A stretch of DNA of 63,285 nt, counting the filler, from Octopus bimaculoides (lineage: Eukaryota): assembly GCF_001194135.2 (NCBI RefSeq). It is 5 parts of 5 records of this genome, joined end to end, with 100 filler letters (N's around TTAATTAATTAA, not from the genome) between each part and the next. Parts side by side here need not be neighbours in the genome. Positions count along the whole stretch, not along the records: positions 20,492 to 48,534 come from NC_069009.1; 4 more parts are not named here. The stretch is one strand, 5' to 3'. The translations under genes and the position numbers were made by a program. A model generated the notes under the pieces. It did not search any database, was not told the DNA's origin, and saw nothing but the letters and a program-made list of their open reading frames with translations. Positions 20,246 through 48,257 of this stretch are shown piece by piece. The first letter of the stretch is position 1. Every line of letters starts with the position of its first letter.

Positions 20246-20806
20246 CCTAATTAAATTATTCTAAATATGACTTGAGATACTCGTTCTGCCTTCATTTTGA
20301 TTATTCCTCTAGTATAATATATGCCTGCTATAACGGAACATCACAAGTAAACTAAACCTCTCGTACTCTCTCTCTCTCCCTGTATATATATNNNNNNNNN
20401 NNNNNNNNNNNNNNNNNNNNNNNNNNNNNNNNNNNTTAATTAATTAANNNNNNNNNNNNNNNNNNNNNNNNNNNNNNNNNNNNNNNNNNNNGAAATTAAA
20501 GAATGTAACGGAACGCTGAACTCCAGACTATCAACTTAAACAACATTTATTCAGGTGGTAAATATATACATCTTTAGCTCTTGTTGTTACAGCTTCTGTG
20601 TGTGTGAGCATAGTTGTTGGGACGTTGTTATGTAGATGTGAGCGAGCTGTCGAGTGTAAGTCCGAAAGATGGAGAGTGACAGCTATACACGTAAAGAGAC
20701 TGTCTCCAGGCTGGAATGTTGGAGACACTGCTTGACACGTCCATGCTCATGGTCGGCCGACCGAGAAAGAGATAGAATTAAGCGGGAAAGCTTGCTTGTT
20801 TAAATC

Positions 20807-27640: not shown

Positions 27641-27969
27641 GATGACAATGATATACATTTGTAAGGCAGTGAGCTGGCAAAACTGTAAGCATGCTGGGTA
27701 AAAACGCTTTGAGGCGTTTCGTCCGTCCTTACATTCTGAGTACAAATTCAATCTTTTGAAGCAGCTTTCTTTCCAGGTGAGCAAAGATTAGTTCTACACA
27801 GGTGGCATAGAAAGCGATAATCTTAAAGCACTGTACACCTGCACAAATCCTCATTAACAACACATACTTATTAATCCACACATTCTTGCAATGAGTGTTG
27901 GAAATGGTACAAAAGAATTGCTTCTCAAGAATATAACATATTTCTGTCAAACCTCATCTAAACATTAAC

Positions 27970-30223: not shown

Positions 30224-30423
30224 TCATTTTGCATCTAATGATAAATATTCCAGTGCAGTAGAACACTCGGCTTCTTCAAGTGCTGCCCTTAGAGTCTCGA
30301 GTGTTCGTGTTTCAGGATCACAACTTTTAAACCACTTGCGAAGCATGAGGTAACCTAGTTTTACAGTGTCATTAGAATCACAATTGAGTTCCAGCTCTGT
30401 AGTGTCAGTTTCTAAGAATATAG
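30224..30423 (-). CDS. Terminal coding exon: rest of death domain (A-IFLETDTTELELNCDSNDTVKLGYLMLRKWFKS...TLETLRAALEEAECSTALEYLSLDAK*)
   Basis: Polypyrimidine acceptor tttttttttgttgtatcttttgcag; 200 nt to TGA at 30226-30224. The MLxxW...TxxxLxxALxxAE pattern is typical of death domains. Confidence 0.9.
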
Positions 30424-30879
30424 CTGCAAAAGATACAACAAAAAAAAATAACTGCAACAACATTAACAATAATATAAGAGATGTATAGGCTGTTATGAAT
30501 ATATTCAATAAGAAACTACTTCTATATGTATGAATATATTCAAAAGAAATGTTATGAATATATTCATAACATATATTGTTATGAATAGATATATATGAAT
30601 GTATATGAATAGATATATATGAATATATATATTGTTATGAATATATTCAAAAAGAAACTACTTCTATAAAGAAATAAAATAGCTAAGAAACAGGAATAAT
30701 ATAAGACATTGTTTTCTATTTCTAAAGACAAAAATAACAAAGGTTGAAACAAAGGAGAAATTTAATTGAAAATTACACTTGAGAACATGTTTGGTAAACT
30801 GATGGCAGGAGAAATATTTGTGAAGGCAAAAGTGTATCAGAACCTCGAGAATCAACTGAGACCACCAACAAAGTATTTG

Positions 30880-31400: not shown

Positions 31401-32093
31401 AAATTTAATCCTATTTGAGTTTTCTCCAATGAACTCAAAATTCGATCAATTCTCCTGAGCCTACTCAGTTATTATTATGTCAGTCTCAGTGAGAGAAGCC
31501 ACCTCCAGTTTGGTTTGACTTGTGAATATATTCATTTTCTGGGAAATTCCCTTACGTAAATTCTCTCTTTCCGGATGGGGAGAATATGATATCATTTGGC
31601 TGTATGATCTCTATTAAGTCACTTTTTATTGAAGCATCTACAGACATGTCATGTGGTAAACTTGTTCCATTATGGCAATATAACTGGAATTATCAGCTTC
31701 CAACACAATAACCCGATCAATAATGGTTTCAAGAAGAACCTAACTTGAGGTCTTAGGTTGGAATAAAGATGCTTTGTCATGGAATTTAACTTTTGCACAT
31801 TTTCTTCATTGCAATAAACTAACAGCAGACTCAGTGAAAATGTAAAACAAACCAAAACTTTGTCGTTAACTCACCTGTTCGCCCTTTAACAACATATTTT
31901 AGTTCCCTCTTCCAAAAGACAGTATTCACACTATTTGTGTTTTCTAGTTTATCCATTATTACCAACCATGCCAACCTCAGTGGATATTTTACGAAATAGC
32001 AGTAGTGCCTTTCATGCAAGTAGTTTACAGGTAACCTTTTGAGTGGAAATTACAGGTAGCCTTTCAAATGGAATACTGTAATTTTATACTCAC

Positions 32094-32165
32094 CTACTTG
32101 CCACCAATTGCTTCCTAACCTCTTAGCCACTCTCAGGAGATCCTTCTCCTTCAGTATTGGACTCT
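32094..32165 (-). CDS. Exon D: N-terminal part of death domain (E-SPILKEKDLLRVAKRLGSNWWQV)
   Basis: ctatttcag acceptor, gtgagta donor; 72 nt. LxxVAxxLGxxW is the death-fold helix 1-2 motif; joins the terminal exon in frame. Confidence 0.85.
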
Positions 32166-33529
32166 CTGAAATAGATATTTCCAAGTTTTATAATTCATAC
32201 TAGAATTTCTTTATTTCTGTAAATAGTCTATTCTTCATTATTGTGAGACATTCCTATCATCAATGGTCAACTGGTGACCACTATGGTTTCGGTGAACATT
32301 TTTGTTCTTTCTACAGTGGTGCCATGTAATAGCGCAATATTTAGGTCCACAACAAAATAGATTAACTTTCCTAAACCCTGTCTCTCTATTCAGACATCTT
32401 ACATAATCTGACAACGTTGCAATTATCACATTTAATTATCATTTGATAAAACAGTTTTTCTCACAGTTCTGTCCTTTCTTTCTTATATCTGTGCCAAATC
32501 TATGACATATCATTGTTCTCTCACTTGTAGATTTCACTGACCAATATTCTTCTTATTTTCTTAATAGCAATGTCAGCCAAAGTGGTCTCCAAAGATCTAG
32601 CCACAAACACATGACAGATAACTTCAAGAAGGTTAAACATAAACCTGGCCACTTTGTGGATAATTTTGAATCTACCAACAATCAGTTCACAAGAACATCA
32701 TCTGATTCAGGAAATATTTCAAGACTTCTTAATAAATTAGCATTTTTCAGGTGAGCAATGATTAGTTCTAAACAGGTGGAACAGAAAGTGATATCAGGTG
32801 TCCTAAAACAGTGTAGCCTTGCACAAAATCTCATTAACTACATATAACTGTTCAACCACACATTATTGCACGAAATATCTGAAACGGTACGTAAGAAATG
32901 ATACTAAGGAATATATAAGCAAGACAGGAATATAGATCACACTGCAAGCACAAACTCCTTAATTTTGCAAGAGTTTTGACTTATTTATTGCTTATAACCC
33001 GTCTTCTCTTTATGCCATTATCTCGATGTCTCTACTCTTGTTGGACAATGAGGTTATGTACCATCATCCTAAACATTTTACAGGTTTCTCTTTAACCTTT
33101 GACATGGCTTTTGCTGCTACTTTGAATTTCATTCATTTCTGCTGACCTTTAGCAAATGACAGCATTACTTATTTGCCTTAAACCACATTCTTGACCAACT
33201 AATTAGTTAATCCAGTTTATCCATAACTATTCGTATATCCTTTTAGTCTGTTGTTAGCATTGTCACATCAGCCATGGATGTTTTCTCAGGTGATTTCCTC
33301 TGAGCCATTTCTTCTGATTAATCTGCTGATCTAATTAACAACTCCATAACAAGCACAAACCAAATGACTCATATTGTGCAACCTACAGCAATTCTAGTTT
33401 CAAGGCGACGCCAGTCTGCTGTGAAATTTTTCCTCATGCACCGAGTTTTAAAATCATTATAGTGGTTCTTTATTAGATTCTTAATCATCTCTCATATATA
33501 AAAGAAGTCCACTACTTTCATCAACAATT

Positions 33530-34250
33530 TATTTAGCATTGGCCATATCAAGCCATACAACATTCAAATCCCTTTTATTTTTCTTTGTGCCTTGTATCAC
33601 ATCCCAGACTGGAAATACATGTTCTACACATCCAGGAATGTCAGGGATTCCACTCTTCTGGATGCTTCCCGTCTCATAGCCATTATTTTGTAGATTTACA
33701 GTTGACCTCTTATCAAGTACACCCATATAAATCTTGCCATCTACATTCAAAGATCGAAAAGAGTGTGAACTGGTCAATCAGATTCCCTTTAGTGTCCTTT
33801 GATAGCTGAACTCCTTCTACCTTGTATCAGTCATCAACCAGTTCACCTTTATGTCACAACTCTCCAAGTAATAAGTAATACACATGACATAATTGAGTAC
33901 ACTTTCTGTGGTACACCATCACCTCCTGGGGTGCTCTTTGCTTGAAATATTTGATTGCTGCTTTCGATGGATATTTGAAACTGTCCATGGGTGGGAGTGG
34001 TTGATCTCGCTTTGGGTCAATGTAGACCTTCTGCATTCACCCATCCAGTTCATCTTTATTGCATTTTAGCTTCCTGCTCTTAGCATCTGCAAACAGCATC
34101 CTTGTAGCCCCATAAAGGTTCTTAAGGAGCTGCTCCCTAATCTGTTTACTCTCTCTGTGACATTTCTTTGCATAAGTTAGAGAGGAATGTTTAATCTTCT
34201 TGACCTCATGACAACCTTTTTAGTGCTTTTGGTAGCATAAAATGTACCCA
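33530..34250 (-). mobile_element. R2/NeSL-like reverse transcriptase fragment
   Basis: SIQKSGIPDIPGCVEH...KKNKRDLNVVWLDMANA matches QKGG.PG..GC.EH..LxVxWLDLANAYGS. Confidence 0.8.
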
Positions 34251-34478
34251 AGGCTCTTTATAATGTGGTTGATGTTGGGGAAGACATGCTACCACAGATA
34301 AGCTGGAATGTTTAAGTGAGATGTGTTCCTCATCCAATCAAGGTGGGCAGTGACTGTTAATAAGAACTGACATGGACGGTGACCACCCATCCAGTTGATA
34401 GGAGCATGGAAATCACATGATAACTGATGAGGACGATGTCATTTATTGCACTGTATCTTGCAGCCAGTATCTATCTTG

Positions 34479-34522
<44 letters not shown>

Positions 34523-35040
34523 ACGGTTGTCTCAGCAGCAAACCAAAGTCTTCTATCTGGATAAAGACAATGTTTTGTGGCTGTAATGATAGATTTATTA
34601 TCAATGAAAAAGGACAGGGTATTCACACTTGGCACACATTTCATTATGTCCACCAGATTATGAGATATATCTGCCCAAACAACATCAACAACAACAATAT
34701 CCTATCAGTAAACATAGTAAAAAAAAATGTAAAATAAACGAAAACGTCATTAACGCACCATTTATTCCTAAATTACGACATATTTTAGTTCTCTGTTCCA
34801 AAATACAATATTAACTCTATTGTCTTCTAAATTATCCATTTCATGAACCATGCTAACCACATTAGATATTTTGTGAAATTTCAGTAATATCAATATATTT
34901 AATAAAATTATTATGCAGCTAATCTCTTTAAATGTAAATTATGAATGGAACCTGTTCTCTGTCATTCTGATAAACTAATAAAGGCTCAGGTGAAGATTAT
35001 ATTTATAGAAATCCACGAGGTACTGATCTTTTATACTCAC

Positions 35041-35088
35041 CAATTTGTTGTGATGTTGTCAGCACCTCCTTCACACACATTGGAGTCT
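35041..35088 (-). CDS. Linker exon C (E-TPMCVKEVLTTSQQI), symmetric phase 1/1
   Basis: attcatttcag acceptor, gtgagta donor; 48 nt, open, in the homologous module position. Confidence 0.55.
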
Positions 35089-35167
35089 CTGAAATGAATA
35101 TTTTCAAGTTTTACCTTTCATAGTATAATTTCATTATCTTTATTAATAATCTATATTTTATTATTGT

Positions 35168-36015
35168 GGGAAGGGCATCAATACATTTTTTAACAGGTGG
35201 AAAGCGGTCCTTGCCTTACTTATTCTCGTTTTAATATCTTCGTCGGTGCCGCCGGAGAACGTTATCTTACTACCTAAATACCTAAACTCAGCTACATCTT
35301 CTAGTTCACCAGTTTCTAGTTTAATACGTTCACTGTTTTTTTCATTAACGCGCATAATTTTTGATTTGTCGCAGTTGACTTTCAATCCTAGTTTGGCAGC
35401 TACTGCTTCTAATTTTGACGTTTCATTTTGCATTTGGCTATATGTTTGTGAAAATAGCGCTATATCATCTGCAAAGTCAAGATCTTCTAGAGCTTCTGCA
35501 TCCATCCATTCAATGCCTGTTTGGCTTTCAATCGTAGTTTCCTTCATAATCCAATCTATAGCTAGTAGAATGTTATTGTATGGGGCTGAGACATGGCGAA
35601 TAACAGTTAAGTTAAATAAGCAAATACAATCATTCATCAATAGGTGCTTGCGTAGTATACTTAAAATCAGATGGGCCGGACACATCAGCAATATGGAGCT
35701 ATGGCAAAGAACGAATCAAGTTTCGATTAGGGAGCAAATATTTAAGAAAAAGTGGAAGTGGATTGGTAGCACAATTAGAAAAGACACACCAAATGTAGTG
35801 AAAAGTGCTTTACAGTGGAATCCGGATGGATATAGAAAGAGGGGTAGGCCTAAGAACTCGTGGCATAGATCAACAAAAAAGGAACAAGAGAAAGGGGGAC
35901 ATTCATAGCAGAGTATAAGTACAGAAGTGAAAAATTATGCGACATGAAATTCAATTATAAGTGTCCTATTTTCCGCGTTGGAGGGTTAAAGGCAAGAAAG
36001 AAAGGGAAGGGCATC
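35168..36015. mobile_element. 5'-inverted RTE LINE flanked by 12-bp direct repeat gggaagggcatc
   Basis: 35570 to 35180 on minus: DWIM..DLDFADDI..YLGS..RISKARTAF. 35571-36003 on plus: LLYGAETW..WIG..ALQWNPDG.RKRGRPK. Repeats at 35168-79 and 36004-15. Confidence 0.9.
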
Positions 36016-36919
36016 CAGTTGTAAGAGCTGTGTCAAAACTGACCTCACTTGTACTGGTGCCACATAAAAAGCACTTAGTCCACTCTGTGGTATGGATGGT
36101 GTAAGGAGGGGCATCCAGCCAAAAAAATCATGCCAAAACAGATACAGAAGTCTGATGTACAAACCATTCAACCCATGCCAACATGGAATCAGACATTAAA
36201 TGATGATTATAATGATTTCTATCATCAATGGTCAACTGGTGACCACTATGCCTTTGGTTCACATATTCTACAGTGTTACTATGTAATAGTACAATATTCC
36301 GAACCACAACAAAATAGACAAACCTTCCGAAATTCCTCTCTCTACATAATCTAACAATTCTGCAATTATCTAATTTAATTATTAATTGATAAGAGTGTTT
36401 ATCTCTTAATTATGCCTTTCTTTTCTTATCTCTGTGCCAAATCTGACATATCATTGCCCTCAAAACTCTGGACTTCACTAACCAAGATTCTTCATATCTT
36501 CTTTTTATTTCTGATGTCAACCCAGTTCATTGACTAAAAATACAGAAATAATCCATTTTGTATGTTTGTCGATCTTGTACCCAAGAAAAACAAAAGAACT
36601 ACATAGAAGGCAACAAAATTTAAAATGTTAGGTGAGGGTACAAGATGATGATGCTACGACAAAATAAGTTTACATTTCCAGTATGTAAGTGTTAGAAAGT
36701 GAATTGAATGATAGCAGATTGATTATCATGTTGATGGGCTATATCCTCATCATCATCATCTTTTAACGTCTGCTTTCCATGCTAGCATGGGTTGGACGAT
36801 TTGACTGAGGACTGGTGAAACCAGATGGCTACACCAGGCTCCAATCTGATTTGGCAGAGTTTCTACAGCTGGATGCCCTTCCTAACGCCAACCACTCAGA
36901 GAGTGTAGTGGGTGCTTTT

Positions 36920-37620
36920 ACGTGTCACCCGCACGAAGGCCAGCCAGGCGGCACTGGCAACGGTCACGCTCAAAGTGGTGCATTTCATGTGTCACCCGCA
37001 CAAGAGCCTGTCCAGGGGCACTGGCAACGATCTCGCTCGAAAATCCCACGAAGGCCAGCCAGGCGGCACTGGCAACGTNNNNNNNNNNNNNNNNNNNNNN
37101 NNNNNNNNNNNNNNNNNNNNNNNNNNNNNNNNNNNNNNNNNNNNNNNNNNNNNNNNNNNNNNNNNNNNNNNNNNNNNNNNNNNNNNNNNNNNNNNNNNNN
37201 NNNNNNNNNNNNNNNNNNNNNNNNNNNNNNNNNNNNNNNNNNNNNNNNNNNNNNNNNNNNNNNNNNNNNNNNNNNNNNNNNNNNNNNNNNNNNNNNNNNN
37301 NNNNNNNNNNNNNNNNNNNNNNNNNNNNNNNNNTTTCATGTGTCACCCGCACAAGAGCCTGTCCAGGGGCACTGGCAACGATCTCGCTCGAAAATCCCAC
37401 GAAGGCCAGCCAGGCGGCACTGGCAACGGTCACGCTCAAAGCGGTGCATTTTATGTGTCACCCGCACAAGAGCCAGTCCAGGGGCACTGGCAACGATCTC
37501 GCTCGAAAATCCCACGAAGGCCAGCCAGGCGGCACTGGCAACGTTCACGCTCAAAGCGGTGCATTTCATGTGTCACCCGCACAAGAGACAGTCCAGGGGC
37601 ACTGGCAACGATCTCGATTG
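36920..37620 (+). repeat. 115-bp tandem repeat inside a SINE-like element
   Basis: tgtcacccgc recurs at 37341, 37456 and 37571; each unit has two ggcactggcaacg sub-repeats. Confidence 0.9.
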
Positions 37621-38259
37621 TATATATGTAATACAATAGCACACTGCCTGACACTGCAATCGTAGATAAGGTAGTTCCTTGAGCAAGCAAAGAAAAATGT
37701 TACCAGTTTCAGGGCCAAATATTAATTAGAATTTATTTTCTAGATCAAATACAAATGACCAGGTTTCGTATCTAACTTGGACAAAACAAGTCAAAACTAA
37801 AACCAAATGGTGCCACTGTGCCACTATTAGCATTAATACCATCTACGAAACCAACGAGTGTGAGTCTAAGAATGACTACACAGATGGTAAATGTTATCCA
37901 ATCAATACAGCAAGTGTATTTTATATATAGTTACAAACAAGGATTTGTGTGTTCAAGTCACATTTGCAACTCAGATTATTTTATGTTTATACTAATACTT
38001 TAAATATGAATAGAGTTTCACCGTTCAATACTAAATTTAACAGTTACTAAAAGTAATTTATTGATCATTTTACTTATTATAATTAAAGAGAGTTAATGTT
38101 TAGCTTTTTTCAATTTATAACAATGGTATATATTCTAATTTGAGACATTCTGAGTATTCACCTGTTATGCACATTATACGTTGTTCAATTTATAATAGTG
38201 ATTTGTAACTGTTATGCCAATTGTGCTAGGATTCGAGTGACTTCCCTTGTTATATTTCG

Positions 38260-38482
38260 TTATTGCCCACAAGGGGCTAAACATAGAGGGAACAAACAAG
38301 AACAGACGAACGGATTAAGTCGATTACATCGACCCCAGTGCGTAACTGGTACTTAATTTATCGACCCCGAAAGGATGAAAGGCAAAGTCGACCTCGGCGG
38401 AATTTGAACTCAGAACGTAACGGCAGACGAAATACCGCTAAGCATTTCGCCCGGCGCGCTAACGATTCTGCCAGCTCGCCGT
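38260..38482 (-). mobile_element. tRNA-derived SINE, near full length
   Basis: ggcgagctggcagaatcgttagc..gagttcaaattccgccgaggtcgac..ggggtcgatgtaatcgac; same family at 56660-57250 and 60310-60520. Confidence 0.8.
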
Positions 38483-39606
38483 CAGCATGTGCATTTGACG
38501 GGAAAAGAAGAGAGAGAACGGCCATTTGGAATAACTTACGTTGAGTCAAGACTATCGTGGATAACACTATAAGACGTCTTTCTATTTAGGACTATGACTA
38601 GAAATTAGTTTCTTTGAACCAGGATTTACTGGTTATATATTACAACACATAAACAAGAGACAACATATTATGATAGATTTTCAGGCTACATAACAACAAC
38701 AACAATAACCAATCAGAAAATATATCAAGAACTTTCTCATTAATTCACCTGCTTACACATAAATAACAACATTTTAGTTCTCTTTTCCAAAAGTCATTAT
38801 TAACTGTGTGTTTTCTAATTTATTCATTTTACCAATCATGCTAAACTGGATTTTATGAAATTTCAGTAATATCTTTAATACAATTACTTTACAGCTAACC
38901 TTTCACATGGAAATTACGAACGCAACCTGTTCTCAGTCATTTTGACAAAGTGGACAAAAACATGGGAACACAGAAGTCAGATGATAAATATTAAGGACGG
39001 TGTCATTGATTGTATTGCATTTTGCAGCTAGCATCTATCTTAAAAAAATAGAGAAAATGGTTGTCTACACAGGAAACCATAGTTTTCTACATGGATAAAG
39101 ACAATATTGAGTGGATGTAATGATAGATTTACTATCAGTGACAAAAGACAAGTTGTTCGCACTTGTAATGCATTTCATTGTAACTCTACCAGATTATAGG
39201 AGTTATCTGCTCAAACAATAACATCAACAATAAACTATCTGTAAACTTAGTAAAAACTGTAAAACACAAATATTGTCATTAACTCACCTGTTTACACCTA
39301 ATCAAAAACATATTTTTCCCTATTCCAAAAGACTAAATTAAATCTATCATGTTTTCTAATTTATCCACATTACCAGCTGCACTAACCTCAGTGGATAATT
39401 CATGAAATTTCAGTAATATCGCTATCATCATCATCATCATCATCATCATTTAACGTCCACCATCCATGTTAGCATGGACGGAATTAGTTTACAGCTAAAT
39501 ATTTCAATTGAAATGTAGGAATGGAAGTTGTTTTCAGTCATTCTGACTATCAGAGTAATTCAGGTGATTTATAGAAATCAATTAAGTACAGTTATTTTAC
39601 ACTCAC

Positions 39607-39678
39607 CAACTTGTAGTGCCTTTCTTTCAGAAGTTGGTACCGCTGCCTGGACTTGCTTGTTCACCAACTTGAGATTCT
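39607..39678 (-). CDS. Linker exon B (E-NLKLVNKQVQAAVPTSERKALQV), symmetric phase 1/1
   Basis: atttatttcag acceptor, gtgagt donor; 72 nt, open. Same length and end sequences as exon D. Confidence 0.65.
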
Positions 39679-40429
39679 CTGAAATAAATATTTCTAGTTT
39701 TTACATTTTATAGTAAAATATTTTAAATCTCAATTAACAATCTATACTCCATTATTGTGAGAGGTTCCGATTATCAATGGTCAACTGGTGACCAATATGG
39801 TTTTGGTCAACATCTTGTTGCTTTCAACAGTGGTACCATGTAATTGCTCAATACTTAGATCCACAACAAAATAGACTGACCTTCCTAAATCCCTTCTCTC
39901 TGTTAAGACAAATAATCTAACAATGTTCCAATTATCTTATTTAATTATCCTTTGATAACAATGTTTGTCTCTAAGTTTTGTCTTTCTTTTCTTATATCTG
40001 TACCAAATGTATTACATGGCATTGGCCTCAAAACCCTAGACTTCACTAACCACCATTCCTCTTTGGCTTAATTCCAAAGTCATCCAAGTTGGTCCTGGAA
40101 GATCCAGTCACAAACACACGAAACACCACTTTGAGTACGATGAAGATACACTGGCTCTCTTTGATAAATGCTGCTGGTAATCATTAATTCTAACTCCCCA
40201 CATTACAGTCCATCAGAATATCATCTGATTCAAGAAACATTTCAAGACATTCGAATGTTATATCCTCCTTCATAAAGCGGCTTTTTTGAACAATGATTAG
40301 ATCAACACAGGTGGAACAGAAACAGGTATCAGATGTTGTAAAACACTGTACACTTGCACAGACCCTCATTAACAGCATATACCTATTCATCCACACATTA
40401 TTGCAGTGAAAATGGTACAATAGAGCTGG

Positions 40430-40880
40430 TTTGCAAGAATACAGTTCAGAAATCCATTACCTTTGTTGGTAATAAAGGTTTCTTCCACAGAGTGGGAGGC
40501 AGATTGTATAAAGCCTGTGTATGAAGAACTATGCTCGAGTGGAGTGAAACATGGGCTGTGAACATTGAAGGCGTGCAAAGGCTTGGAAAAAATGAAGCCA
40601 GCATGCTTCACTAGATGTGTAATGTAAGTGTACAGGTACAACAAAGTCTGAATGTTTTAAAAGAAACATTGGGCATCAGATGTAGCGCACAAGGGAGAAG
40701 ACTGTGTTAGTATGGTCATATAATGTGTATGGATGAGGTCTATTGCATAAAGAGGTGCTGATATCCAAATGTGGAGAGAGGTTCTGAAAAAGGAACACCT
40801 GGGAAGACTGGGCTGAAATAGAGAGAAATGATTCTTAGATGTTGAATCTAAGAGACAATTGACAGTTTGCTGTGCTTCAG
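40430..40880 (+). mobile_element. RTE/RTE-X LINE 3' fragment
   Basis: Frameshifted GRLYKACV..TML..SETWAV....QRL.KNEASML..MC, and later PGKTW-like motif. Confidence 0.7.
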
Positions 40881-40919
40881 AACACACCACCCACCTAAAT
40901 AAAATAAAGGTCATAAACA

Positions 40920-41495
40920 CATTTCAGTCTCCCAAAAATGCCCTCCACACAAACACAATCAACTGAAACCAGAGTGTCTTTTTTGGTCAGCTAAAAGCAG
41001 TTTTGGCACAAACTTGGCAGACACACGTCTCATACCCAAATCTTCAGTGATAATAGACTGAACTGGACAATAACTAATCTTCACATCCTCTGATAACTCA
41101 CGGATGGTGAGTCAACGATTTCCCCTCACAGCTGCAGGCACATCTGTGATGTTTTTCTCAGTTCTGCTGGTTGCATGTCTCGCAGAACGTTCGTCAATAT
41201 AGACATTTTTTCGACCATCTTGGAAACGTCTGAACCACTCGTACACTTGTGTGCAGCTCATACACTCCTCCCTATACATTTTCTCCAGCCTTGCATAAGC
41301 CTCTGAGCAGGTATCATCAAGGTCAGTGTGATGACCACACACTACACACCTTCATTGCAAACACTGCTGTAAACAGCGGATGTGAGCTAGTTTGTAAAAA
41401 CTTGGTGCATATGCACAGTAGAGTTTAAGGTCAATCTTTTCCAAGCGGCTTCACTCTGTGTGCTTTAGCTTCCTTATTATATCAACAGTCCAGAT
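40920..41495 (-). mobile_element. Mariner transposase N-terminal (HTH) fragment
   Basis: EAYARLEKMYREECMSCTQVYEWFRRFQDGRKNV..DERSAR..TSRT, continuing RLTIRELSEDV..EDLGMRRVSAKFVPKLL. Confidence 0.85.
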
Positions 41496-44140
41496 GCTTA
41501 TTGATCAGATTATGTATTGTGAGACATTCCTATCGTCAATGGTCAACCAGCAACCCCTATTGTTTCTGGTCAATAGGTTTATACTTTCAGCAGTGGCCCC
41601 ATGTAATAGCCCAATATTTAGATCCACAACAAAATTAATTGACCTTATTAAACCTCATCTCTCTATTAAGACATCCTACATATTGCATTTAATTATCGCT
41701 CGACAACAGTTTTAATCTTAGTTGTTTTGTTTCTTTTTTTTATATATCTGTACCAAATCTATGACGTGTCATTGTCCTCTCGCCTCTAGACATCACTAAC
41801 CATCATTCTCCTCATCTGCTTAATTCCAATGTCAACCAAGGGGGTCACCAAAGATCTAGCCACAAACACTTCAAGAAGAATAAACATATAACTGCTCTCT
41901 TTGCTAAAGGTTGCTTTTGGTAATCCCTAATTCTGATTCCTCACATCAGAGTTCATCAGAATGTTACCTGATTCAGGAAATATTTAAATATCATTCATCT
42001 TTAATAAAGCAGCCATTTTTCAGGTGAGCAATGATTAATTCTACACAGATGGAACAGAAAGTGATATCAGGTGTCGTAAAACATTGTAACTTGTACAAAA
42101 CATCGTTCATCATCCTCATTTAATATCCACTCTCCATGCTGGCAGGGTTAAATGGCTTGACCGAAACTGATAAGCTGAAGAGCTGCACCAGGTTCCAGTC
42201 TGATTTGGCATGGTCTCTATGGCTGGATGCCCTTCCTAACACCAACCAATCAAGGAGTGTAATGGGTGCTTTGACATGTCACTGACATGAATGTCATTTG
42301 CATAACACTAGCAACAATCATGACTACGATGCACAGGTACCCTTTGCATGGTACTCTCAACAAACACAACTACAGTTCAGGAGTGTCCTTTCCATGGAAC
42401 CATCGATGACCATGACTGTGATTAGGATTCACGGGTGCCATTTACAAGGCAGCAGATATGGCCTGACTCCAATTTCATGCTTGCCATTTACATACTCTCA
42501 CTATAAAACGTCATTAATTTGTCTTTCTGTTTCTTTAAGTCATACACCATGCTGGTCTATGACAACACCATATTCTTCAGTGAGCCACTACCGTAGACAC
42601 AGCACAATTAAGTCTCTGTAGTAGCTCCACTTCTGCATTATTGATAATGATAAATGTTTCCTTTTCTTTTACTCACTGTTATCCACTGGAGTATTGGCAA
42701 TTGTTTTTGATATTTCCAGTGTAAATTATATACAAAGTCACAAGAAGCAACACAAAGACAGCAAACTGCAAATGGACGTTATCTCTCTATGAATGCTGAG
42801 ACACAAATGATGCTTGGTGGTAAGTGGCAGCTGACCTACCAAGCACTGCCAAGTCATGCTTGAGTGAGTAGGGTTACAGTGATCAGCTGTTTGAGCACCA
42901 AACATCCCATTACAGCATGCTTCACCCTCCACAAAAATGTTTGGTTTTGGGGTCTTTCTAGATTTTAGATTTCCAGATAAAGGATTGTGTATCTGTTTAA
43001 TATATGTTCTGGGTATAAACCCCAAGAGATTACATGTTATATTAAAAATTAAACTATTGTAATAATTTGAGGTATTTATAAGACGTTGAATCACGAAGAA
43101 TTACTGGAGGACATTACCACAATCAGTATTTAATATCCGTTTTCTAAACTGGTATGGGTTGGATGATATGATAGGAGCTGTCAAGCCAGAAAGCTGCACC
43201 AGGTCCCATATCTTTGGCATGGTTTCAATGGCTGGATGCCCTTGTTAATGCCAATCACTTCACAGAATGTACTGGGTCTTTCTATGTGGCACCATGACTG
43301 GCATCACCCAATCAGTGCATGGGAGCACAGAAATCAGATGGTAAATGATGAGGACAGTATCATTTATTCTATTGAAACTAGCAGCCAGTATCTTTCTTGA
43401 AGAGAGAGGGGGGGGTTGTCTGAGGAGGAAAGTAGAGTCTTCTAAAGTAAAGACAATGTTTAGTAAAGATGGAGTTAAAACAAATTTTAGTGGACGTAAT
43501 GATAGTGAAAAGAGACAGAGTTCACACGTTGAACAATTTTCACCATAGCATCTGGTTAAACAAATACAGCCACAGCAATAACCAGTCAGTAGACTCTGTA
43601 AACATATAAAACAAACAATCACTTTGTCTTTAACTCATCTGTTTTTCCCCTACAGAACAAAATAATTTTAGTTCCCTCTTCCAAAAGACATTATCAACTC
43701 TAATTCAGCCATTTTACCAACAGTGCTAACCTTAGAGGACATCTTATTAAATTTCAGTAATATATTCAAGGGGTTTCTTGACTGGGAATAACAGCTACTG
43801 CTGCTTGTAATTGTATACAGAGAGAGAGAGAGAGCGAGAGAGAGACCACAGGGAGATGATAGACACAGTGAATAATCTCCAAAAGGGGAGAGAACCGCTT
43901 CAGGGTTACGCTTCGTCTTTTGTATTTTTTCCTATCTTGAGAGACTTTTTTCCTATGAGTAAAAGATAATCTCATGTTTCCATATTTTTATAAAATCCAA
44001 AAGGATAGAATTACTTTATAGCTAACCATTTAAATTAAATGCAGAAATGGAACCTGCTCTCAGTCATTCTGACAAACAAGTTGACTCTGGTGAAGGTAAA
44101 CTTTATGGAAATCAATTAGGTACTGTTAATTAATACTCAC

Positions 44141-44189
44141 CAGCTGTCTAACACCGTCTGGACTTCCTTCTCTTCCATCTTTGGAATCT
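44141..44189 (-). pseudogene. Degenerate paralogue of the linker/death-domain exon (pseudo-exon A, EIPKMEEKEVQTVLDS)
   Basis: Sits at the homologous module position with an intact gtgagta donor. The acceptor reads ttttgg instead of tttcag, and the 49-nt length breaks the phase-1/1 symmetry. Confidence 0.45.
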
Positions 44190-44739
44190 CCAAAATGTGT
44201 GCTTCCGACTTTTATACTTTATAACAAAATTTCTTTATCCCTATTAGTAATCTATATTTTATGATCATGAGAAATCTCTTTCATCAATGACCAACTGATG
44301 ACCCCAATGGCTTTGGTCAGTATTTTTAGTTTCAAGTGTTACTGCTTAGTATCTCAACACTTCGGTTCACAACAATATAGACTAGCCTTCCTAAATCTCC
44401 TCTCTCTCCATAATCTAACAATGATGTAACTATCTCATTTAATTATCTCTTGATAATGTAATAATATAATCACAGTTCAATACTAATTTAACATTCAATA
44501 AAAATAATCTAACGATCAATATTCTCATATTTAATCTTTTTTTTTTGTTTTTTTTTTTGCATTTACAACTATGGTGTATATATTCTAACTGGAGACATTC
44601 TGAGTGTGTAAAATATGTTGTAATTTCTCCAACATTCCAAAACAACCGATTTAACAATCAGACTCATTTATACTGGCCCTTCAACTCTCGCAGTTGAGAT
44701 TTTGTCATTGAAATTCCTACATTACAAAGCTGGCTCTGA

Positions 44740-45070: not shown

Positions 45071-45379
45071 TGATAACAACTGGGACCTTTGAGATTTGTT
45101 GATATCTCAGTTAGTCGACATTTATCGTTCAGTAAAATGCATTAATGTTATGTTGTAGACAGTACCCTCTTGATGTGTGACAAGTTTCCTACTTGGATAA
45201 AGACAATATTCAGTGGGTGTAGTCATAGAAATACTGTCAAAAAGAAAAGGCACCTGGAACTTTTTTATCAAAAGTCTGTCAGATTCTCACAGACCTGGGT
45301 CTACAACAAAATGAAATACATCATTGCCCACCATAAATTCCATGAGACAAACAGGCAGGTCATCAAAAAGTATCCTTAC

Positions 45380-45519
45380 CAAAACCTCTTCGTCTGTTCA
45401 TACATGTTCTGCACTTGGGGCATCTTTTAAGTTTAATTGTGTAGCACTCTCCACATACCGCATTATGTGCACAGGGTTGTAACTCCACAGTGGCCTCATT
45501 TACTTCACAAAGCATACAC
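45380..45519 (-). CDS. RING-HC (C3HC4, MIB/IAP-like) exon: CMLCEVNEATVELQPCAHNAVCGECYTIKLKRCPKCRTCMNRRRGF
   Basis: Acceptor ttttcttctgcag, donor gtaagg; 140 nt, phase 2 to 1. All eight Zn ligands are present (C-x2-C...C-x-H-x3-C-x2-C...C-x2-C). Confidence 0.9.
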
Positions 45520-45949
45520 CTGCAGAAGAAAATAAAAACACATTCCACCTATAACATTCATTTGTAACAAATATTACATCGTGTCCATGTTTACAGTACA
45601 GAATATTATGAGGCACTGCAATGTCCAGAGTGAGGAACATGGCTTAGTGGTTAGGCTATTGGACTCATGATTGTGTAGTTATAGTTTCATGTTTGAAGCA
45701 TCAATATGTGAAACTGCCAGGAAATATCGATGAGATGCAGTACATGATAGGAGAACAGAGGATATAAAAGAAGGTGCAACAGAGCGTCCAACCATATCAA
45801 GTGGGTGACTAATATTTGAACTATGTTTAGCAACAAAATTGGATGGTAAAATGTTCTGAAAGTTTGTTTGTTCAACAACAGAGGCTGCCTCACTCTCTAG
45901 TTGGCTTTTTTCGCAATCCCTACACACGTCAATTTATAGGCAATCCCAA

Positions 45950-47030
45950 AAGACTGTACAGAGCTTATTGCTGAATACTACACTGGCAATTTTACAGTTG
46001 GAAATTCAAATGAACCATCTTTACTGCTCCCGAGATCAAATTCCATGTCACTTGTTGAATTTATTTCTACAATGCTGTGATGCCAATGGAAGTTTTGAAG
46101 GTGTTATTTGTCTGCTTCTCAAAGGGTGCATCCTTTTTCTATACTTCTAATTCAGCTTAACCCAGTATAATGGAAAATTGCCTGTGTTATTCCTCTTCTC
46201 AAAAAGGTTGGCCAGACATCACCTGTTGATAACCATCCAGTCAGTCTCACTGAATTAACGGTTTCCTGTGAAAGAGAGACATTCTGAAACACCTGAACTC
46301 TCAACCTTATTGATTTGGATTCCTAACTGTAACTGCAGTGGTCAAGTCAACCCATTGATTTTCTTGAAGACATCACCTAAACCACAGATGGTGGTTCATA
46401 GGTGGATGTTATCTATCTCAACTTCACCAAAGCCTTTAATTTTATGCCACACAAACGAATTATGGCAAAAATGTCTGCAATGGATGCGAGGCCTAAATTT
46501 TATAACTAGTTGAAGTCTTTACATTCTCAGTTGAAAAGAAATTGTCACAGTACTAGGATAACATTCTGCACCCAATACAGAAGATCTGTAGGGAACTGTT
46601 CTTCGTCTTCTGTTACTTCTTGTATGTGTTAACTAAATCCATGCCAACTATATGCCATAGATCATTCCTTTAATCTCACCTGGACACAATGCAGTAATGG
46701 ATTGCTGACTGGAAACAGAAGTTGGCTATAAACAGGTGCACCACCATACAATATGGGAGGAAAAGCCCAGAATTTATCAACTCCTTTCAAAACACCAAAC
46801 TTAAGAATTCTATCAGTGACCTTGACCTTGGCATTAATCTCAACAATGGTCCTTGATGGATGAACCACATTCTCAAAATCATCAAAAAGATTAAAGTTGT
46901 CTTAGCATCAATCAATCAGTCTGCCATTTATGGCCAATCTATTTAAAGTTAAATATGGCTATCATATGTCCACACAGTTTGCATCTCCAATCTGGAACCC
47001 CATCTTANNNNNNNNNNNNNNNNNNNNNNN
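45950..47030 (+). mobile_element. Decayed CR1-clade RT fragment
   Basis: VDVIYLNFTKAFNFMPHKRI, and later W..DWKQKLA.NRC motifs across stops and frameshifts. Confidence 0.7.
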
Positions 47031-48081: not shown

Positions 48082-48257
48082 CGTGATTGTAAAAATGTTT
48101 GTAATTTTTCTTTCAAAGCTTGATTGGTAATGTAGTCCAGCGGTGTATTTCCTCTGCTATTTTTATGGTAAAAGTCGGCACCCTGGCGGGCTAGATAGCA
48201 AGCAACCACCACACCAGAGAGCCTATTATCTTTGCTTCGTTTGAGCTCAGTGCAGCA
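48082..48257 (-). CDS. Internal exon of ANK-RING-death domain gene: last ankyrin-like repeat (CCTELKRSKDNRLSGVVVACYLARQGADFYHKNSRGNTPLDY...), phase 0 to 2
   Basis: Acceptor tttgtag and donor gtaagta on the minus strand; 176 nt, open frame. GADxxxKNxxGxTPLD is an ankyrin junction motif. The phase-2 end (CG) joins the RING exon in frame. Confidence 0.8.

Follow-up and report, generated by a model that had tools for sequence, protein, structure and literature searches.

Tandem exon duplication arrays in animal genes have been reviewed (PMC9013439). In such arrays, homologous exons that share phase and approximate length lie side by side, having been copied together with their flanking introns; they add or swap protein segments, and the best known examples are spliced in a mutually exclusive way or as cassettes. 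Here, we describe an array of this kind in a 63,285-nucleotide (nt) stretch of Octopus bimaculoides DNA (the window; assembly GCF_001194135.2, five parts joined with filler, positions 20,492 to 48,534 from NC_069009.1), within the gene for XP_014783123.1, a 333-amino-acid (aa) protein annotated as "MIB2-like". Unlike in the best known arrays, all of the live copies are used together in all RNA sampled here and the protein is lengthened, and copies of a domain exon have turned into a predicted disordered linker. The explanation that we favor as a whole, with moderate confidence, is that the region is the 3′ half of the annotated gene, encoding ankyrin repeats, one MIB-type RING, a linker and a death domain, and that it holds an ordinary tandem exon-duplication array with a moderately conserved intronic patch; a generator of diversity is not supported for the window gene.

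Several other described systems resemble parts of this locus. A conserved intronic element upstream of each array exon is also described for Dscam exon 6, with its docking and selector clusters (PMC1431710), and for ATE1, with its competing RNA structures (PMC7797038); the octopus locus differs from them in that it has no shared docking complement, its exons are not mutually exclusive and only three are live. The MIB1/MIB2 E3 ligases share with the window protein a MIB1-like ankyrin fold (PDB 8v0e) and a C-terminal zf-C3HC4_3 RING, but they carry N-terminal MIB/HERC2 and ZZ domains and two or more C-terminal RINGs and have no C-terminal death domain, whereas the window protein has a single RING and a death domain. 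The solved death domains of RIPK1, ankyrin-3, PIDD, TRADD, FADD and Fas are matched over almost their whole length, but here the death domain is joined to a RING and ankyrin repeats, and its first exon appears to have been duplicated and reused as a linker. In small nucleolar RNA (snoRNA) host genes, the intronic RNAs are better conserved than the exons. The likeness lies in a sense intronic element of ~150 nt, one per intron, that is better conserved than the adjacent exon; in the octopus gene, however, this element has no family match, supported structure or stable RNA signal, and the host is protein-coding with conserved domains. A literature search found no paper on this octopus ankyrin-RING-death-domain family.

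The gene lies on the minus strand. A plus-strand gene was rejected, because the RING-like and death-domain-like open reading frames (ORFs) and every junction, read as CT..AC on the plus strand and GT..AG on the minus strand, point to the latter. In a profile search, the family protein P0033 (P-numbers denote family proteins), which is XP_014783123.1, showed 100% identity across the RING, B, C, D and last exons, and B, C and D are already ordinary exons in its public annotation. The Pfam scan was performed with an assembled construct of 234 aa, running from the last ankyrin exon to the stop, with the N-terminal 99 residues outside the scan. It placed zf-C3HC4_3 at 27.0 bits, exactly at the cut-off of 27, and the cysteines of the predicted RING, which are invariant in 34 family members, fit the RING profile. 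The Pfam Death model (PF00531) matched residues 153–229 of the construct, of which exon D forms residues 145–168, at 18.9 bits, below the cut-off of 22.6; in the paralogue P0001 it scored 30.7 bits against the same cut-off. A profile built from exon D and the last exon matched solved death domains, with RIPK1 first (E = 5e-6), followed by ankyrin-3, PIDD, TRADD, Fas and FADD (E from 5e-6 to 4e-3 for RIPK1, ankyrin-3, PIDD and TRADD). Since the profile aligns to them from its position 3, exon D is the start of the death domain, as an initial annotation of this stretch had claimed. The precomputed Pfam list of P0033 contains only ankyrin families and zf-C3HC4_3, with no MIB/HERC2 or ZZ domain, and "MIB2" is therefore a naming convenience. 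The MIB1 ankyrin domain is one of several that the ankyrin part resembles in fold.

An AlphaFold2 run with the alignment of the 34 family sequences gave a predicted local distance difference test score (pLDDT) below 50 over residues 198–244, spanning B (204–227) and C (228–243), and scores of 70–92 over the ankyrin region and the death domain. Residues 250–329 were confidently modeled, with helices at 250–270, 287–301, 309–318 and 322–329 (pLDDT 70–91), that is, four resolved helices versus the six of the death fold; a fold search was dominated by the ankyrin part. B and C are thus predicted to encode a disordered linker of ~40 residues between the RING and the death domain.

The exon chain was read from O. 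bimaculoides RNA data sets (X1, X2, X9, X20, X21 and X22 below are such sets), comprising nine runs from six studies, three of them as raw reads and two plus four as contigs. Reads and contigs gave the junctions 45380/39678, 39607/35088, 35041/32165 and 32094/30423, all GT..AG on the minus strand, and the joined exons keep an open frame (…CPKCRTCMNRRRGF / ENLKLVNKQVQAAVPTSERKALQV / ETPMCVKEVLTTSQQI / ESPILKEKDLLRVAKRLGSNWWQV / AIFLETDTT…LSLDAK, then stop). As junction tables on a 15-kb stretch were swamped by repeat artefacts, the partner sequence was read at each exon edge instead. In the three raw-read runs every acceptor had a sole upstream partner: the RING exon for B (55 reads, agreement 0.96–1.0), B for C (84 reads, 0.96–1.0), C for D (81 reads, 0.99–1.0) and D for the last exon (79 reads, 0.93–1.0). 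The contigs of two further runs hold the whole chain with the same four junctions, and those of four more runs are concordant at the two junctions of exon D, the only ones checked in them. Neither exon skipping nor use of A was seen in the window gene's RNA across the nine runs (four at the exon D junctions only), and A was skipped in 55/55 reads that join the exon B acceptor to the RING exon. With a single partner per acceptor, the alternative inclusion that characterizes a cassette or mutually exclusive cluster was not found, and B and C, present in every junction read, behave as constitutive exons in the sampled RNA. The assembly gap at 37079–37333 lies in the intron between B and C, within a 115-nt tandem repeat of a high-copy element; the reads link 35088 straight to 39607, so the gap is irrelevant to the reading frame. 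A gap-free copy of the locus was sought in L005 (L001–L005 are the paralogous loci described below), which was rejected as such: it is a paralogue with 82–95% identity.

Three other features of the RNA were recorded along this chain. At 32150–32165, a minor transcript (5 reads in X22; an X2 contig at depth 4.3 versus 23.5) has GGAGTTAAAACTTGG instead of AGAGTCCAATACTGA as the first 15 nt of D but is unchanged at the end of exon C and from nt 16 of exon D; its probable source is a divergent allele or a close paralogue that was not sampled. At the end of the RING exon, about half of the X20 depth continues into the intron at 45330–45379, where a stop 6 codons on (…RRRGFGKDTF, then stop) would yield an ankyrin-RING protein without the death domain, and this depth could be intron retention or merely unspliced RNA. 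Over the RING exon at 45380–45520, most of the mapped reads derive from a near-identical paralogue, and their upstream partner (…EKLKACLLS/R) fits P0035, not the window exon at 48083; mixed bases occur there at 45409, 45414 and 45427.

Self-comparison and multiple alignment identified five modules, D, C, B, X and A (Table 1), as against the about five previously proposed. They can be aligned over about 600–1000 nt, extending several hundred nt on either side of the exon, with ~70% identity overall and two better conserved patches (80–87% identical), which we call the block and up2. The hallmarks of a tandem exon duplication array are present: the acceptor and donor flanks are near-identical, the flanking introns are 69–85% identical, and the exons of 72, 48 and 72 nt are all phase 1/1 with an open frame, next to a dead copy, A, of 49 nt. 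Of the four homologous short exons in the initial annotation, B, C and D are live, whereas A lacks an AG acceptor and is never used; it is 2 nt short of a live 51-nt exon type found in paralogues and is out of frame. The insertion in module C carries a reverse-transcriptase ORF fragment at 35161–35691 (Pfam RVT_1, 32.5 bits). Separately, downstream of the 3′ end of the gene, positions 27770–27935 carry a copy of the far-upstream part of a module, 74–76% identical to 32744–32915 and 40287–40441, which may be a remnant of another family member.

This anatomy points to repeated tandem duplication of a 1–1.5 kb unit consisting of an upstream intron, a phase-1/1 mini-exon and a downstream intron, the founding unit presumably being the one that bears the first death-domain exon, D; an origin of the array by duplication had been anticipated. 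Two extra copies, B and C, are now in every sampled transcript as the predicted disordered linker. Copy A has decayed, its acceptor being gone and its length breaking the frame, and copy X has lost its exon, with a transposon fragment beside the break. Exon D would be held by the death-domain fold, and B and C would have been freed, needing only to keep the frame and avoid stops, and so would have drifted fast, with in-frame indels changing the freed cassette exons from 72 to 48, 51 or 78 nt across the family. The introns adjoining the exons would have changed more slowly, with the block and up2 moderately constrained.

The identities within the window agree with the earlier hand counts. Exons B and D match at 36/72 positions and the intronic stretches 32236–32375 and 39750–39889 at 120/140 without gaps, both exactly as counted before. 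Shuffled versions of B matched D at 19.4 ± 3.7 positions; the observed value is well above this, and the exons are thus still recognizably homologous. In a MAFFT alignment of modules D and B, identity was 50% in the exon, 72% in the ~70 nt adjoining it, 227/331 (69%) in the other aligned intron, 122/144 (85%) in the block and 87% in up2, and both the exon and the block differed from the intron (Fisher P = 0.004 and 0.0002, respectively). Exons B and C both lie further from D than the aligned intron does. The block is not the sole conserved piece; conservation extends to the acceptor and donor regions. Five paralogous loci were fetched in addition, two from O. bimaculoides (L001 and L005), one from O. 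vulgaris (L002) and two from O. sinensis (L003 and L004). Exon D is 88–90% identical to its counterparts in L002–L004, 96% in L005 and 72% in L001. Pairwise among the D-type modules of the window and L002–L004, identity was 86–92% in the exon, 76–99% in the block and 74–100% in the neighboring intron, the top of these ranges coming from the near-identical O. vulgaris/O. sinensis pair. The D-type introns cluster by position across loci, the window B and C introns join at ~0.22, and the exon types differ by 0.4–0.5.

Such a contrast between exon and intron had led the initial annotation to propose diversifying selection on the exons or conversion of the introns. The ratio of nonsynonymous to synonymous differences per site (pN/pS) gave no evidence of the former: it was 0.94 for exon B versus D, with both site classes near 0.5, and 0.4–1.8, from only a few changes, among 78-nt cassette copies of recent origin. 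Values around 1 fit relaxed constraint.

Conversion has some indirect support. In one alternative, the modules evolve in concert: gene conversion or unequal crossing-over keeps the module introns alike, tracts that overwrite exons are selected out or absent, and the block is a functionless, best-preserved patch. The window gene and L005, both from O. bimaculoides, indeed form a conversion-like mosaic, in which patches of 95–100% identity alternate with patches of 67–88%. In comparisons with L002–L004, synonymous divergence is 0.33–0.76 in the ankyrin, RING and last exons, and the D module introns of the same gene pairs differ by only 0.16–0.20; in addition, the paralogue modules t2 and t3 have identical exons with introns 1–5% different. 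On the other hand, recent conversion within the window was not seen, as no module pair exceeds 87% in any patch, and block D is as near to the blocks of other loci (sD 84%, vD 81%) as to block B (85%). The D-type introns group by position rather than by locus, and conversion alone does not account for the fact that conservation peaks in the same two patches at every locus. We therefore regard concerted evolution as an unlikely full account, although occasional conversion among the many paralogues probably adds to the intron similarity. Within the comparison with L005, the most diverged aligned patch is 30330–30449 (L005 ~46430–46550), in the 5′ part of the last coding exon, which encodes the middle helices of the death domain; its identity is 67–73% against 85–100% in its surroundings, and its pS is 0.44 versus 0.04–0.13 in the other exons, which points to a conversion mosaic or local fast evolution.

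A second alternative, that B, C and perhaps A are regulated cassettes giving combinatorial linkers, with the block as a control element and the exons under diversifying selection, is closest to what the initial annotation envisaged. As it had stated, B, C and D start with AG, end with G and are phase 1/1, with Glu at each junction into them; their lengths are multiples of 3, and every subset would keep the frame. Alternative exons typically show less conservation than their intronic flanks, the number of units ranges from 0 to 4 in paralogues, and the linkers of predicted O. sinensis isoforms vary by entire units. In the window gene, however, each acceptor has a single upstream partner (55–84 reads each, plus the contigs of two further runs at all four junctions and of four more at exon D), A has no acceptor and would shift the frame, pN/pS is about 1 and not above it, and the isoform models of paralogues rest on near-identical cassettes, where the mapping of spliced reads is ambiguous. 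We consider regulated cassettes quite unlikely. What stands of the earlier proposal is that B and C, which are indeed spliced in, encode the linker between the RING and the death domain, and that the length of this linker varies between paralogues and in predicted isoforms; cassette use and length variation do not occur in the window gene's sampled RNA.

The variation in the family is nevertheless substantial. A search that reaches only proteins sharing short exact words with the query returned 72 relatives, all from Octopus (O. bimaculoides, O. vulgaris and O. sinensis), and by this search the family is lineage-expanded and found only in Octopus. The relatives carry 0–4 linker units: some have none, some one 17-aa unit, and others one to four 26-aa units (APKFEDRCVQTEATCQELGAASQAI). 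Proteins with a common N-terminus differ by whole 26-aa units. The predicted O. sinensis isoforms of one gene have three cassettes (X1) or a single one of them (X6, X7, X8; these are isoform numbers), and in other predicted isoform pairs the difference amounts to exactly one or two 17-aa units; the O. sinensis isoforms are computational models over near-identical exons. Were they real, the family might use cassettes combinatorially, with up2 and the block as shared control, switched by cell or immune challenge and tuning the spacing between ligase and death domain, and the window gene would have been sampled "all-in"; we give this only a slim chance. A regulated diversity system, unsupported for the window gene, is for the family a possibility, and the analogy to immune-gene diversification that had been drawn is speculation. 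As a separate observation, the predicted O. sinensis proteins P0023, P0025, P0002 and P0003 have one identical N-terminus and up to four 26-aa cassettes. Three of these cassettes are APEFEDRC units that the fetched assembly of the locus lacks, and L004 (20286–20315) has two APKFEDRR units and an RPIFEDKEVQ exon; cassette copy number may vary between assemblies or individuals, or repeats may have been collapsed.

We examined the block across loci with a profile of the five window copies, which found 22 copies in six loci (the window and L001–L005) of three Octopus species. All 22 are in sense orientation, between the RING exon and the death-domain exons and upstream of cassette and D exons, and none was found outside the RING-to-death-domain interval in the ~230 kb of the six loci. 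In 16/19 modules with a recognizable exon, the block ends 55–82 nt before the acceptor; this does not hold for exon C (1125 nt), for one paralogue exon (297 nt) or for one weak partial match. In every module a GA run separates up2 from the block, and the cassette modules of O. vulgaris and O. sinensis have an expanded version of it.

In a region so rich in transposon fragments, the block could be an unrelated short interspersed element (SINE) or miniature inverted-repeat transposable element inserted into each module. Homologous sequence flanks the block collinearly in every module, and it is thus not an independent insertion; it also keeps the same offset from the exon, is absent elsewhere in the six loci and is free of the RNA and contig depth spikes of the true repeats here. 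ARAGORN found no tRNA in it, on which ground a tRNA-derived SINE was rejected. An inserted repeat, which would have refuted the earlier reading, has almost no chance of being the explanation.

The dimensions of the block, ~150 nt in sense orientation, one per intron and ending ~70 nt before the acceptor, also recall an intron-hosted non-coding RNA gene of the snoRNA or microRNA kind, and ANANNA-like and ACA-like motifs can be found in it. However, Rfam gave no match at E ≤ 1, single-copy folds differ between copies, and the RNAalifold consensus reached only −7.2 kcal/mol with an unfavorable covariation term of +0.42. The lone shared element is a 9-bp hairpin (TGGTCA-N5-TGACCA). Its pairing, in 90% of cells, was equaled by 46/500 shuffles and its covariation score by 41/500, and neither is significant. 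In three RNA-seq runs, a data type in which RNAs of ~150 nt are usually lost, there was no pile-up over blocks D and B, where depth equaled the intron background. What would be the hinge carries indels of 2, 4 and 8 nt. A non-coding RNA is accordingly very improbable. Two further candidates were rejected. For docking/selector pairing, a search for complements of at least 12 nt (G:U allowed) between the module upstream regions and the whole pre-mRNA returned scattered AT-rich matches and no shared site. For a coding or alternative exon, the 2-, 4- and 8-nt indels speak against it, and tblastn of the 72 family proteins against the module introns gave chance-level matches.

Alternatively, the block and up2 may be a DNA-level enhancer or internal promoter copied with each module, serving for instance death-domain-only transcripts. 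The conservation is in the primary sequence, with no significant covariation; up2 has two putative TAAT cores (ATAATTAAAT, GATAATTG), and the block has TTGACCA…TGGTCA-N5-TGACCA, a candidate palindrome of the kind bound by dimeric DNA-binding proteins, both motifs being read by eye. The block persists in the exon-less module X and in module C, 1.1 kb from the exon, and the predicted O. sinensis protein P0019 begins just before a D-type exon. These motif matches are short, though, no reads mark an intronic start, blocks D and B stay at the intron background and all D reads are spliced to C, and we find a DNA-level element improbable.

We return to the ordinary duplication array, in which the block and up2 would be moderately constrained non-coding patches copied with each module. 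This is its weakest step, and our best guess is that they bind factors that help to define very short exons in long, transposon-filled introns. Several observations weigh against this explanation. Exon C is in all reads even though its block is 1125 nt away, and a paralogue exon tolerates 297 nt; module X retains an 80%-identical block with no exon at all; and among D modules of different loci the block, at 80–84%, is barely above its neighbors at 74–85%. The distant block C, the exon-less module X and the small excess between loci together mean that a close-range splicing enhancer is not required. Exon B differs from D at 36/72 positions and the flanking intron at ~21–31%, that is, the exon changes faster than this intron. 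Since the exon has diverged beyond the intron beside it, the intron is constrained, converted or both. Drift alone would suffice only with such an intron, which leaves room for positive selection on the linker. Finally, the RNA base is small, with tissues and conditions unspecified for the nine data sets and four runs covering the exon D junctions only.

Read as an ordinary array, the locus is an RNA-verified, clean example of a known process, in which a domain exon is duplicated with its intron and the copies are retained as a predicted disordered linker. It also exposes a large Octopus family with ankyrin repeats, RING and death domain that is misnamed MIB2 in public annotation and whose linker varies by whole exon units; if linker length governs how the ligase reaches partners that the death domain recruits, the family would offer a natural test series. 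Exons that diverge more than introns in a young multigene family are expected from relaxed exon constraint and paralogous intron conversion, and alone are no proof of a diversity system.

Table 1 Features of the window gene and its modules, listed in the direction of transcription (positions in the window).
Feature	Position	Strand	Basis or remark
Last ankyrin-region exon (…LSGVVVACYLARQGADFYHKN…KLQTFLQS)	48083..48254	-	tblastn with family proteins; X1 contig joins it to the RING exon at 45520; part of P0033
RING exon, 141 nt (CMLCEV…CPKCRTCMNRRRGF)	45380..45520	-	Read depth and junctions; Pfam zf-C3HC4_3
Module A	43.3-44.5 kb	-	Self-comparison, alignment
Module A up2 patch (GATAATTAAAT…GTTAGATTAT)	44410..44447	-	Module alignment
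Module A block	44259..44407	-	nhmmer E=7e-39 (1e-38 with a larger target set); 69-73% identical to blocks B, C and D
Pseudo-exon A, 49 nt	44141..44189	-	Acceptor TTTTGG, not TTTCAG; GTGAGT donor kept
Module X (no exon)	41.5-42.1 kb	-	Homology ends at the block
Module X block	41512..41664	-	nhmmer E=1e-42; 80% identical to block D
Mariner-type transposase fragment	41112..41342	-	Pfam HTH_48 (Mos1 transposase), 27.8 bits; just downstream of the expected X exon
Module B	38.96-40.4 kb	-	Self-comparison, alignment
Module B up2 patch	39912..39949	-	87% identical to module D up2
Module B block	39749..39901	-	Ends 70 nt before exon B
Exon B, 72 nt, phase 1/1, ENLKLVNKQVQAAVPTSERKALQV	39607..39678	-	Junctions 39678/45380 and 35088/39607; in every junction read
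Additional, incomplete module copy (downstream-intron part)	38717..38949	-	Self-blastn
Tandem repeat of 67- and 115-nt units, high-copy element, intronic	36911..37616	.	Holds the gap 37079-37333; very high RNA and contig depth
Module C	34.4-36.5 kb	-	Split by a 1.04-kb insertion
Module C up2 patch	36346..36383	-	Module alignment
Module C block	36214..36343	-	3′ end cut by retroelement insertion; 1125 nt from exon C
Insertion of ~1.04 kb between block C and exon C	35173..36213	-	Module alignment closes once it is removed
Exon C, 48 nt, phase 1/1, ETPMCVKEVLTTSQQI	35041..35088	-	Junctions 35088/39607 and 32165/35041; in every junction read
Module D	about 31.8-32.9 kb	-	Self-comparison, alignment
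Module D up2 patch	32403..32440	-	Module alignment
Module D block (32236-32375 in the initial annotation)	32235..32387	-	Ends 69 nt before exon D
Exon D, 72 nt, phase 1/1, ESPILKEKDLLRVAKRLGSNWWQV, first death-domain exon	32094..32165	-	Junctions; Pfam Death and PDB death-domain matches
Last coding exon (remainder of death domain)	30224..30423	-	TGA stop 30226-30224; 3′ untranslated region to ~29930; X9 contig spans 29935-30423

Two minor observations concern the remainder of the locus. The intronic repeats, among them 36743–38571 and 34479–34523, include a transcribed, very high-copy family that takes in the 115-nt array and reaches a word depth of up to about 1e5, as well as a (GA)n microsatellite. 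At 30276, in the death-domain coding exon, all of the X20 and X22 reads and about half of those of X21 have T>G relative to the assembly, which is a polymorphism or an assembly base error.

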